A DNA stretch of 11,658 nucleotides, from sequence record MK054218.1; one strand, given 5' to 3'. Below the pieces are notes generated by a model. The model did not search any database, had not been told where the DNA came from, and was given only the letters and a program-made list of their open reading frames with translations. Position 1 is the stretch's first letter; the number at the start of each line of letters is the position of its first letter. Shown one piece after another: positions 255 to 11,658 of the stretch. The position numbers and the translations under genes are program-made.

Positions 255-288
255 GGTTGCCAAAACATGTTTATAAGCATTGGCAACC
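255..288 (-). promoter_or_regulatory. Putative int promoter: TATA-like (C)TTATAAA flanked by a 9-bp inverted repeat
   Basis: GGTTGCCAA (255-263) and TTGGCAACC (280-288) enclose the TATA-like element at 270-277, about 33 nt upstream of the int ATG. Confidence 0.55.
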
Positions 289-539
289 CGTTAATTTTTG
301 CCGTGATTTGCGACGAATTGAAAGAAGACGGCAAAAAGTCCTCGGAAGTAATAATATATGATAATCTTGTTTCTAACGCGTTCAAGTGGACTGTACTTTA
401 CGAGAAGGCAATTATTAAGGTTAAGCAGGCAATAGGTAGGGCAATAAGGGGGCCTCAAGATTCCGCAACAATCTACCTAATTGACAAACGTTTCACATAC
501 AAGAACGTAATGGAGAAGATGGGCTTAGAGGTGGCCTAA
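267..539 (+). pseudogene. C-terminal remnant of a Rad3/XPD/DinG-family SF2 helicase
   Basis: AIIKVKQAIGRAIRGPQDSATIYLIDKRF matches the motif VI region of XPD/DinG helicases (QxxGRxIRxxxDxxxxxLxDxRF). No Walker A, DEAH or Fe-S region is present. The ORF-track 5' extension (45-266) is antisense to int. Confidence 0.8.
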
Positions 540-1133
540 ATGGTTGATAGGGAAACGCTTAGGAGGATTGTCCAAGAAAAATTAAAGAAAAATAAAGACG
601 GAAATAATAACTCAGCGACACAAAATAATTCAAAAAATGAAGTGTCGTTTGATAAAAATTCTCCGGAAGTTCAGAAAGGGTATAATGAAAATGTGTCGTT
701 TGTGTCGCCCAATTTAGTAAGCGACACACGAGAAAAATTCAAAAGCGACACAAACGACACAAATTCCTCTATCTCTCCAAATACTTCCGGAGAATTTTTA
801 GCAGAAGAGGAGAAAGAAATTGAAGACGGAAATAATAACTCAGCGACACAAAATAATTCAAAAAATGAAGTGTCGTTTGATAAAAATTCTCCGGAAGTTC
901 AGACAGAGAAAACCCAAAATGTTACGTTTGTTACGCACAATTTAGATGGCGTAACAAGAGAGAAATTCAAAAGCGTAACAAACGTAACAAATCCCCCTAT
1001 CTCTTCCCAAACTTCCGGAGAATTTAGCTCAGAAGAGAGTGAAAAAATTCAAAAAAGAATTAGTTGTATAGGTTCATTTTCGGCTTTTTCTTTTCTTCTT
1101 TCAAAAGCCTTTCAAAAAATTGCCTTAATATAG
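540..1133 (+). CDS. Low-complexity repeat protein (two 76-aa repeats) carrying an iteron-like DNA array; the C-terminal ~25 aa are probably read-through into the antisense of the next gene
   Basis: ATG directly follows the helicase-remnant stop, with RBS GAGGTGG. The protein repeat mirrors a 228-bp DNA duplication. Confidence 0.5.
   Translation: MVDRETLRRIVQEKLKKNKDGNNNSATQNNSKNEVSFDKNSPEVQKGYNENVSFVSPNLVSDTREKFKSDTNDTNSSISPNTSGEFLAEEEKEIEDGNNNSATQNNSKNEVSFDKNSPEVQTEKTQNVTFVTHNLDGVTREKFKSVTNVTNPPISSQTSGEFSSEESEKIQKRISCIGSFSAFSFLLSKAFQKIALI
595..1050 (+). repeat. Tandem 228-bp duplication (595-822 / 823-1050) with nested inverted repeats
   Basis: 595-675 is identical to 823-903 (81 bp). The remaining 147 bp align without gaps, with 39 mismatches by hand count. 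Inverted repeats: 653-670/783-800 (18 bp), 692-708/745-761 (17 bp), 884-898/1011-1025 (15 bp), 920-936/973-989 (17 bp). Confidence 0.97.
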
Positions 1134-6627: not shown

Positions 6628-6866
6628 CGGACGCAATTTCCCTAGCTTTACAAACCGGTTTAGGGCCGGTAATTGCGGTCGTTATTATCATAGGAATGAT
6701 GGGACTAACATACAAGATGGCGGGCAAAGTACCGGCGATTCTTGTAGGTATAGCCTCAACTTTCACCCTAACTTTCATGAATTTCTTACCGCTTTTTTGG
6801 GGCGTTGCGATCATTTTGGGTCTGATAGCCGGGTTAATCTTAGGAGGTGGTAGGGATGGGGACTAA
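6624..6866 (+). CDS. Small membrane protein (SSV1 B78 homolog), 80 aa
   Basis: ATGA overlap with the VP4 stop; hydrophobic; syntenic. Confidence 0.88.
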
Positions 6867-7356
6867 GCTAATAGTATACGTCCTATTGTTTGACGTCTTT
6901 CTAGCGTTAATGGTAGGTGCTTACGGCGGTATAACGCCACCGTCAATTCCACCGATACCTTCATATAGTTTTGACCAAGCTTTAGCGTCATCAATTGTAT
7001 GGACTGTGGGGTGGCCACCCATTACGTTATGGGGGCCCGTGACACTTATTCCGCCGTTTTCCATTTTAGGGGCTAACTTTCCGGGACTAACTTTACCGGG
7101 TGTAACGATACCGGGTGTAACATTGTTTAGTATATCGTTTTCATGGTTGGCCCCAATCCTTTACCTGATAGGTTGGCTAACGTGGATGTTTCAGACAACC
7201 GATAGTGTTTTAGGGTATCTAATATCTATATTCACTTCTTCTATAGGATTGTTAGCGAATGTACCGACAGTAGGGCCGTTTTTGACGGCTTTCGTTTTGA
7301 TTGTCAATTTCATCCTCATTTGGGAAGTGGTGAAATTGATAAGGGGTGGGCCATGA
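6856..7356 (+). CDS. Membrane protein (SSV1 C166 homolog), 166 aa from ATG 6856
   Basis: [33 protein letters not shown]; Pro-rich region; RBS GGAGGTGG; syntenic. Confidence 0.9.
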   Translation: MGTKLIVYVLLFDVFLALMVGAYGGITPPSIPPIPSYSFDQALASSIVWTVGWPPITLWGPVTLIPPFSILGANFPGLTLPGVTIPGVTLFSISFSWLAPILYLIGWLTWMFQTTDSVLGYLISIFTSSIGLLANVPTVGPFLTAFVLIVNFILIWEVVKLIRGGP

Positions 7357-10842: not shown

Positions 10843-11658
10843 TCAAACGTGGGGGACACCCCCACAGTTACTCCTTAACCATTCCGCGTATTTACGATAA
10901 TGTTCTTTCGCAATTCCGAAAAGCGATACGTAATGTTGGGTTAAAATGCGGGTGGGCTTCCTACCCTGGATAAAGTCAATAACGTCTAACGGTATGCCTA
11001 TTTCAGCCATTTTAGACGCGACAAACTTTCTAACATATTTTATCGCAACGGCATCCTTATTTCGTCGCTCAAAATCACTTATCGCCCATTGTGTTATGTC
11101 AACTTTGCGTAACGGCGTTAAGTGGAATACGTAGAAAACGCCTTTATATCCGCGTTGCCATGATAGCGGATAATAGCATAGGAGTGGGGTTGTAGGGGTA
11201 CCCCCTACGTCGCATATATCACGTTCAGGTTCCTTCAAAATGCGGAGTATTTCGCTCAGTCTACTACCGCTCTCTAACGCTAAGCGGTAGACGAGATAGA
11301 CATTTTCGCTATATTCTTTCGCTATTTTGAGCGTGCGTTTGATGTCTTCTAAAGTCGGTATGTAAATATCGGCGTTGGTCTTCTTCACTTTAACGACCTT
11401 TAATATCTTCTCGGCGAAATCGTCACTTATTATTCCGCGTGAGGCTAAGAATTTCGCAAATAGTCTATACGCTTTCTGAGAATTCCTAGTTTCGCGGAAC
11501 GGCTTCGCTAAAGCGGAAACGTACTCTTTAGCCGTCTTTTCTGTTACTTTACGTTCTGTTAGTAACCAATCGTAAAACGCCTTTATGTTGCCTTCCGACG
11601 CATATTGGCGTAAATTGGCAACCAACGCAATTTTACGACGTTCTTCTCTCTCTTTTCC
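10843..11658 (-). CDS. int: Integrase catalytic part, Int(C), SSV-type tyrosine recombinase; frame open to the window end
   Basis: ESGSRLSE (catalytic Arg), KYVRKF (K-x-x-R), QGR, TQHY (catalytic Tyr). The frame extends upstream of the track start 11625 as [12 protein letters not shown]. Confidence 0.97.

Follow-up and report, generated by a model that had tools for sequence, protein, structure and literature searches.

Stem-loop origins of replication are known, and so are origins that lie inside the gene of their own initiator. Among the lambdoid phages, the specificity of the iterons varies together with the N-terminal domain of the O protein. Site II of SV40 and the polyomaviruses, and the E1 site of papillomaviruses, consist of repeats arranged 2+2 and head-to-head, on which two facing hexameric helicases are assembled. 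In pRN1, the origin is a stem-loop of ~100 nucleotides (nt) downstream of orf904, which has to be intact for the plasmid to replicate (Berkner et al. 2014, PMC4234260). Here, a nested palindrome is described in the genome of Sulfolobus spindle-shaped virus (SSV) M.06.0.8v1, a circular fusellovirus genome from S. islandicus of Mutnovsky, Kamchatka (GenBank record MK054218.1). The window, that is, the whole stretch of DNA that was analysed, has 11,658 bp and is identical to this record. It is firmly supported that the palindrome is a conserved, selected cis-acting nucleic-acid element, built in two tiers on one axis within the 5', linker-coding part of a gene for a replication-type helicase, and that the constraint on it acts on DNA complementarity. 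The favoured reading of its role, to which we give a probability of about 45%, is that it is a structure-forming DNA element that would serve as the origin or helicase-loading site of a replication cassette, and that it would be a relic in this genome.

Two palindrome units in one reading frame

The palindrome is present in two adjoining units. In unit 1, the left outer arm TAAAAATTCTCCGGAAGT (653-670, encoding NSPEV) pairs perfectly over 18 nt with the right outer arm ACTTCCGGAGAATTTTTA (783-800, encoding TSGEF), and inside this pair the left inner arm TGTGTCGTTTGTGTCGC (692-708, encoding VSFVS) pairs perfectly over 17 nt with the right inner arm (745-761, encoding SDTNDT). Both pairs are centred on 726.5. 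The left inner arm carries the hexamer GTGTCG twice, 9 bp apart, and the right one carries CGACAC twice. Unit 2 is centred on 954.5, with perfectly paired outer arms of 16 nt (884-899 and 1010-1025) and perfectly paired inner arms of 17 nt, where the hexamer is GTTACG on the left (two copies, 920-936, encoding VTFVT) and CGTAAC on the right (two copies, 973-989, encoding SVTNVT). A preliminary description of this DNA, made from the letters alone, had reported unit 1 with exactly these coordinates, arm lengths and common centre; for unit 2 it had the centre and the inner arms right but gave the outer arms as 15 nt instead of 16. It had also pointed out that the inner arm is switched between the units while the outer one is not, and this is borne out: the outer arm TTCTCCGGAAGT is the same in both, and GTGTCG becomes GTTACG in 5/5 core copies. 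What it missed was the recent tandem duplication by recombination, the location in the coding sequence of a replication-protein remnant, and the iteron-like motif copies outside the palindrome.

These further copies are found in several places. Each unit has an unpaired copy of its own motif on the minus strand in the middle (722-728 in unit 1; 950-956 in unit 2, where it is switched together with the arms). Upstream of unit 1 there is a pair of copies, CGACACA at 616-622 and GTGTCG at 642-647, and this pair is repeated unchanged before unit 2 (844-850 and 870-875), so that the copies at 844-875 are out of register with the core type of unit 2; in SSV14 the upstream copies are replaced. Altogether TGTGTCG occurs seven times, always inside 616-850 (0.73 expected), and TGTTACG five times inside 920-989, and elsewhere in the genome the hexamer motifs show no excess over chance. 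The middle copy at 722-728 offers an alternative pairing with the proximal left hexamer (701-708 with 721-728, 8 nt with a loop of 12, seen via the SSV12 equivalent), and the same alternative is found in ASV1 and in three other loci of the collection described below (L012, L013 and L047). In addition, the right outer arm of unit 1 pairs perfectly over 18 nt with the left outer arm of unit 2 (783-800 with 881-898, centre 840.5), and the tandem array can therefore be folded in more than one register.

The window contains five perfect inverted repeats of at least 12 nt with a loop of at most 150 nt, all of them at 653-1025. In 200 dinucleotide-preserving shuffles, the mean number was 0.135 for repeats of at least 12 nt and 0.005 for repeats of at least 15 nt, and the longest arm was 15 nt. 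As a single strand, unit 1 folds with -38.3 kcal/mol as DNA (z -8.9) and -63.1 kcal/mol as RNA (z -9.2), and unit 2 with -35.1 kcal/mol as DNA (z -9.6). DNA folds at 60-85 °C were discarded, as the energies from the ViennaRNA DNA parameters fell with rising temperature and the structures were nonsensical, an artefact of extrapolation.

Both units lie in one open reading frame (ORF) at 540-1133 (plus strand, 197 amino acids), which consists of a conserved N-terminal helix (MxDRETLRRIV.EKLKK), the linker encoded by the two palindrome units and an unrelated tail of 35 amino acids, after which it ends at 1133. Over residues 1-88 it has 100% identity with the beginning of a 681-amino-acid protein of SSV12, and it matches PHROG 24043 (E-value 5e-71). 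The P-loop ATPase core and the C-terminal winged helix are deleted. The ORF corresponds to the first ~95 codons of an MCM-like replication ATPase gene of the pSSVi type (~680 amino acids) and is a 5' remnant of it. GenBank instead annotates the region as a minus-strand ORF at 559-729 and a plus-strand ORF at 702-1133, the latter being a shortened version with its start at the second hexamer's GTG. From the relatives it is seen to be a single ORF, 540-1133. Directly upstream, ORF 267-539 (plus strand) is a 91-amino-acid remnant (the last 91 codons) of a Rad3/XPD-like helicase gene, with a stop codon that abuts the ATG at 540. It has the C-terminal motif AIGRAIRGPQD...YLIDKRF and is fused in frame to unrelated upstream codons. 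In SSV12 the corresponding helicase matches Pfam Helicase_C_2 (E-value 1.5e-23), and in L013 and L014 a still shorter helicase remnant precedes an intact MCM-like gene. Compared with SSV12, positions 381-834 of the window form a 454-bp island, containing the 3' end of the helicase gene and the module, between deletions of ~2.5 kb and ~4.4 kb.

The two units are an in-frame tandem duplication of 228 bp (76 codons) and are 82% identical. Unit 1 (589-816, GTGTCG core type) is identical to the single unit of SSV12, and unit 2 (817-1044, GTTACG core type) to the single unit of MK054212, in which only the second core type is kept. The duplication junction carries a short shared sequence, AAGACGGAAATAAT, at 592-606 and 820-834, with AAGATGAAAATATT at the matching place of SSV12; this microhomology suggests that the duplication may have arisen by unequal crossover. 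A similar sequence, GAAGACGGCAAAAA (324-338), is present at the left deletion junction. Near the same junction, a degenerate match to the outer arm (333-349) was considered as the trace of an outer-arm crossover and rejected, as it belongs to a different helicase variant.

Conservation and covariation of the arms

The gene and its DNA were collected from phage records, from a metagenome scan and from look-ups of ten database proteins; loci of this collection carry L numbers. The metagenome scan was seeded with conserved ATPase motifs and is hence unbiased towards palindromes. In the main clade, an inner inverted repeat is present at the equivalent place in 21/21 loci with a readable 5' end, and an outer repeat shares its centre, to the half-base, in 15 of these 21. 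As examples, the outer and inner repeats share the centres 2850.0 in ASV1, 256.5 in L011, 246.5 in L012, 2720.5 in L013, 1708.5 in both L047 and L049, 1674.0 in L048, 1717.5 in L051, 678.5 in L052, 1843.5 in L055 and 1816.5 in L056. A third tier is present in L049 and L054. The inner loops have 29-37 nt (36 in the window) and the outer loops 108-116 nt, with the exception of L054, which has an inserted repeat and whose outer loop reaches 147 nt. Outer arm and spacing, on which the preliminary description had made its proposal depend, are thus kept in most relatives but not in all: the outer arm is degenerate in SSV7, L015, L016, L050 and L053, and its left copy is deleted in MK054215.

The two tiers vary in different ways. 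The outer arm TTCTCCGGAAGT is conserved across lineages, third codon positions included, and where it varies the change is compensated on the other side (TTCTGCAGAAGTAT/ATACTTCTGCAGAA in L055; CTACGGAAGTTT/AAACTTCCGTAG in L054 and L012). Nearly every lineage has an inner hexamer of its own (GTGTCG, GTTACG, GTACCA/GCACCA, GTGCCA, GTGGCA, GTGGCG, GCATCA, GTGTTA, GTGGTG, GTCCCA and TTCCCA), yet the arms remain complementary on one axis. The division into a shared outer and a variable inner site, originally drawn from the two units alone, holds in the comparison of lineages. In a symmetry profile, complementarity is 90-99% at 17-35 nt from the centre, 60-70% at 45-50 nt and again 80-90% at 56-71 nt. 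Covariation was counted on an alignment of 19 modules. Here, 18/18 inner pairs have changes on both sides with 94.2% of cells paired, and 10/18 outer pairs have compensated double changes. Over the whole structure there are 105 double-change cells, compared to 34.9 +/- 4.2 in column shuffles (0/500 reach the observed number), and the count falls to 12-32 when the partners are slid by one to three columns. Pairing fails mainly at two positions of the spacer between the hexamers and in the two innermost columns, where the arms vary in length; this spacer reads AAT on the coding strand of both arms in five lineages.

One could argue that the pattern is due to selection on a repetitive protein segment, or to chance, since short peptide repeats such as VSFVS and SDTNDT are encoded here in an open reading frame. 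The shuffles and the covariation count against this, and it is already contradicted. None of the 200 shuffles reaches the observed repeats, and the encoded peptide is predicted to be disordered and is hypervariable. The change from GTGTCG to GTTACG turns S into T, a conservative exchange, in one arm but D into V in the other, so that what is followed is complementarity and not the peptide; we regard this explanation as hardly credible.

A more serious question is whether the arms pair as RNA, i.e. whether the element is a hairpin within the rep mRNA, in its 5' part, that controls translation, stability or processing, or that is an antisense target. The region always lies within a transcribed and translated gene and in one orientation, its insertions and deletions (228, 51 and 33 bp) are in frame, and the RNA fold, about -63 kcal/mol at 37 °C (z -9.2), still has -14.7 kcal/mol at 80 °C. 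The alternative pairing between the proximal left hexamer and the middle copy, which recurs in several lineages, would also be in line with a switch. However, only 2 of the 342 inner cells are G-U, and RNA stems normally tolerate many more. Such scarcity points to DNA rather than RNA pairing, because few wobble pairs are expected if both DNA strands have to be self-complementary, or if the symmetry of the duplex is read. In addition, the element is kept, duplicated and perfect in genomes where no gene body remains to be regulated, and a scan with Rfam 15 gave no family at the gathering score (the only match, MIR8562, had 33.5 bits against 211 and is a generic long hairpin). An RNA hairpin is on these grounds distinctly unlikely.

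A second clade, which includes pSSVi and MK054236 and whose protein is only 35-39% identical, has an equal plan with unrelated sequences. Its conserved outer repeat AATCGTCAACT/AGTTGACGATT (loop of ~86 nt, encoding SSTQN and SVDD) encloses variable 9-bp iterons, and a compensated variant of this repeat is found in L033. Here too the tiers share one centre, at 932.5 in L018 and 2096.5 in L022, and L032 has three tiers at 669.0. In MK054236, three copies of TCCCCTAAA are followed by three copies of TAGGGGAAA around a centre of 6 nt. Some central loops in this clade are short (6-15 nt), which would be favourable for the formation of a hairpin or cruciform. The nested palindrome of pSSVi (L061, NC_013777.1, 482-600) occupies codons ~47-86 of ORF735 and has arms of 55 nt that are 82% complementary, a loop of 9 nt, a perfect outer pair of 15 nt (GCGAAATTGTCAACA) and TCCCCGGA iterons. 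With 5,740 bp, this integrative satellite of SSV1 and SSV2 is the only plasmid in PLSDB with a homologue, and ORF735, its largest gene (735 codons), is 38% identical over the ATPase core. In RefSeq, ORF735 is labelled only as 'MarR family transcriptional regulator'. The original pSSVi paper reportedly called it a replication protein and noted that it was without a prim-pol domain. A statement in PMC8371274, which cites Ren et al. 2013 for it, is that replication of the pSSVi episome rises upon infection with SSV2.

The replication cassette and what the element may do

In intact relatives, a single palindrome unit makes up codons ~25-95 of a gene of ~680 codons. SSV12, SSV14, MK054215, ASV1 and SSV7 have a complete helicase gene, and the MCM-like gene follows directly (split in SSV7). 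The SSV12 protein of 681 amino acids has a P-loop, a sub-threshold match to the Pfam MCM P-loop family (E-value 2.6e-4) and a match to PHROG 24043, a group of unassigned function. Homologues carry Pfam PF27228 (precomputed), and more distant ones also TrmB/MarR-type winged-helix domains. In the AlphaFold model of ASV1 C674, residues 11-93, the palindrome-encoded part, are disordered, with a predicted local distance difference test (pLDDT) score of ~24; after them come a beta-rich domain, the ATPase and winged helices at the C terminus. The best Foldseek matches of this model are MCM subunits (E-values 2e-4 to 1e-3) and MarR-type regulators. The MCM resemblance may serve as a lead, not as proof, because the model is of moderate quality (mean pLDDT 61). 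A prim-pol domain was not found in Pfam, NCBIfam and fold searches, a sequence-profile search of the PDB gave no match, and a scan of genome contigs with a single protein query found no relative. Makarova et al. 2014 (PMC4158269) describe ASV1 C674 as a relative of the helicase domain in a prim-pol fusion protein and propose that it takes part in initiating viral replication. The palindrome array is located in the 5' coding region of this gene in SSV12, ASV1, SSV7 and pSSVi, and the protein may be the initiator.

On a tree of the protein body with 18 rows, 12 motif changes are needed, and identical motifs recur on distant branches. The metagenome contigs L047, L048 and L049 form a three-way mosaic (nt ~1560-1900), with recombination breakpoints flanking the module: from the helicase gene to about codon 20 of the MCM-like gene, L049 shares 96-100% identity with L048, and from about codon 117 to where the locus ends it shares ~100% with L047, whereas the core is GTGTTA in L049, GCATCA in L048 and GTGCCA in L047. 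Since L049 matches L048 on the left, L047 on the right and neither in the core, the module is passed from one genome to another as a cassette, the crossovers lying at its edges. On the same comparison the inner motif is independent of the variants of both neighbouring proteins (the ATPase body and the helicase), so that it needs no matching protein variant. A protein domain that co-varies with the hexamer was not found in the two neighbouring genes, the metagenome contigs being short.

These exchanges bear on the chief rival, in which the element is an iteron array (an origin or operator) bound as duplex by a sequence-specific protein that co-evolves with the hexamer and would have to be encoded elsewhere, the palindrome then reflecting a symmetric oligomer. 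This is modelled on lambda O and its iterons and on the SV40 T antigen on its four GAGGC pentamers. Much in the fine structure speaks for it: every lineage has two hexamers per arm at a fixed period of 9 bp, arranged head-to-head as 2+2 (3+3 in MK054236), and there are 5-10 copies of the lineage's motif in both orientations, including the unpaired ones in the middle, upstream and downstream. The five lineages with AAT on both arms keep the hexamers complementary while the 3-nt spacer is not, and the MCM-like protein has C-terminal winged-helix domains. Against it stand the near-identical helicases of L048 and L049 with GCATCA and GTGTTA, the near-identical protein bodies of L047 and L049 with GTGCCA and GTGTTA, and the recurrence of motifs on distant protein backgrounds. 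Furthermore, the upstream copies do not match the core type in SSV14, an isolated virus, and motifs elsewhere in the genome are not beyond chance. We consider a duplex-bound array unlikely.

The same breakpoints could also be taken as signs of a functionless hot spot of recombination or template switching in a poorly constrained region that codes for a linker, where the likeness of the arms is maintained by quasipalindrome correction and gene conversion, and cores are exchanged via the conserved flanks. Besides the breakpoints on both edges of the module, the tandem duplication would fit with this, as would several natural variants. MK054211 (L057, 495-800) has a hybrid unit with GTGTCG in the left inner arm and the middle copy and GTTACG in the right inner arm; it evidently stems from a crossover between units 1 and 2 of a presumed two-unit parent. 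MK054215 (L007, 2760-2780) has an in-frame deletion of 51 bp between copies of GTGTCGTTTG, which removed the left outer arm, and this provirus retains a full MCM-like gene. In SSV14, the upstream region is a mosaic, with a foreign segment before the module. The encoded peptide is predicted to be disordered, and the broken variants persist as proviruses. A hot spot does not account for the two-tier plan on one axis with fixed spacings, found across clades that are 35-39% identical and have unrelated arms, nor for outer arms that are conserved at synonymous positions. Mutational bias can keep palindromes, and explains neither their double origin nor the fixed geometry. This makes a functionless hot spot very unlikely.

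The favoured reading, a structure-forming origin, can be set out as follows. The Rad3-like helicase gene and the pSSVi-type MCM-like ATPase gene would form an accessory replication cassette, carried by a subset of fuselloviruses and by pSSVi, and the nested palindrome would be the cis-acting DNA element that belongs to it. The element lies in the codons for the disordered N-terminal linker of the ATPase, and because this segment encodes a disordered peptide, its nucleotide sequence would be free for a second purpose. Once the region is unwound or single-stranded, the arms could pair within one strand as a hairpin or cruciform. The sequence-conserved outer arms and the junctions would be the part that is recognised, and the inner arms a structural stem that need only match each other. 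Such a symmetric structure could load a hexameric helicase, viral or host, head-to-head, and replication would start there. In the 11.7-kb virus, both enzymes of the cassette have been deleted. The element survives as an island and would have been duplicated through unequal recombination between two core types; it may then be either a relic or a cis site served by factors supplied in trans. This reading is favoured because the element travels with the replication cassette and with the small pSSVi replicon, because the stem co-varies freely without a linked change in protein, because wobble pairs are nearly absent, and because experiments on pRN1, a plasmid of the same hosts, have demonstrated an origin of the stem-loop kind (PMC4234260). 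A bolder version, in our view quite improbable, is that the inner arms are a self-specifying address that works by base pairing and not by protein, that the module is an origin or incompatibility cassette traded among fuselloviruses and their satellites by recombination at its conserved outer arms, and that the 11-kb viruses with two different cores and without the cassette enzymes are satellite-like derivatives that could draw on factors of two types of helper.

A number of observations weigh against a structure-forming origin. The main weakness is the iteron-like detail, as the near-identical hexamers repeated directly in each arm at a 9-bp period and the copies outside the palindrome are required by no model of pure structure. 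The central spacer of 29-37 nt in the main clade argues against an easy extrusion from duplex DNA of the cruciform that the preliminary description had suggested, and in the virion positive supercoiling would also work against it. The centre (709-744) is not AT-rich (~33% GC compared to ~35% for the region). The MK054211 hybrid, with its mismatched arms, is a natural broken-stem mutant, and MK054215 is without its left outer arm; both are proviruses and may not be viable. SSV1, SSV2 and several of the Mutnovsky SSVs have no module, and A460 of SSV-K1, another homologue, which was expected to carry it, begins directly with the protein body. For this reason the module cannot be the universal origin of fuselloviruses. 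pSSVi has other, non-coding stretches that could hold its origin. Up to 2018, none of the SSV origins had been characterised (PMC6080066), and a mapped origin for any fusellovirus was not found in later accessible papers. No sign of an origin is seen around the module in base composition or GC skew. In a scan for sigma-70 promoters and intrinsic terminators the counts equalled those in shuffles, these models being uninformative for archaea.

The surrounding genes of MK054218 are those of a fusellovirus, as the preliminary description had assumed. The record opens with the 3' portion of a tRNA gene at bases 1-44 (Rfam tRNA positions 29-71), and an SSV-type integrase gene on the minus strand spans the start of the record, from 10843 to 237 (45-237 plus 10843-11625). 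The record is therefore a provirus cut at its attachment or integration site. It encodes a 788-amino-acid homologue of the end-filament protein and a Cas4-like nuclease, and paired small paralogous ORFs are found in the place of the SSV1 structural genes, with VP3 among the matched features. Between the start of the integrase gene and ORF 267-539, an 8-nt inverted repeat (GGTTGCCA/TGGCAACC, 255-288) surrounds AAACATGTTTATAAGCAT, which contains a TATA-like TTTATAA; it could be an operator at a divergent promoter. A 15-nt tandem repeat with ~3 copies is located at 7069-7121, within ORF 6847-7356.

The candidate origin compared with known origins

The element is a sharply bounded origin candidate of ~150 bp for one class of fuselloviruses and satellite replicons. 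Its natural mutants (a swapped core, a mismatched hybrid, an arm deletion and a duplication) make the origin question testable in Sulfolobus, and a small defined origin could serve as a new vector part for genetics in the Sulfolobales. It is also a clear case of dual coding, with a structured DNA element inside a disordered linker, where 18/18 stem positions co-vary and the reading frame is kept. No description of the element was found in the accessible literature, outside of which are the papers on pSSVi (Wang et al. 2007) and on SSV7 and ASV1 (Redder et al. 2009).

Among the closest systems is pRN1, another mobile element of Sulfolobales with a long stem-loop beside its replication gene and a structure that is conserved among relatives. 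In pRN1, however, the stem-loop is non-coding and 3' of the gene, and the Rep protein has a prim-pol domain, whereas the element here has two or three nested tiers inside the 5' coding region, and its Rep is a helicase-only, MCM-like protein. With the lambda origin it shares the placement of repeats within a replication gene (the initiator gene O in lambda, that of a putative initiator here), in a segment for a flexible linker, and the fact that the repeats differ between relatives; in contrast to lambda, the motif is uncoupled from the protein body and there is no adjacent AT-rich block. The short repeats are 2+2 and head-to-head as in the SV40 core origin and the papillomavirus E1 site, but there the repeats are invariant, bound by a defined origin-binding domain, non-coding and without an outer tier. 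In archaeal origins with origin recognition boxes (ORB) for Orc1/Cdc6, inverted recognition elements flank the helicase-loading site, as is proposed here, although ORBs lie outside coding sequence and on either side of an AT-rich unwinding element. Neither an ORB match nor a link to Orc1/Cdc6 or WhiP was seen for the element, no search aimed at them being made. The homologous protein of pSSVi, ORF735, has a similar nested palindrome in its gene, with arm sequences of its own and a short central loop of 9 nt, and unlike the virus described here, pSSVi keeps the whole gene and replicates on its own. While each of these systems has some of the features, the combination of a nested design, hypervariable inner arms that co-vary, exchange as a cassette and placement in the codons of a disordered linker appears to be new.

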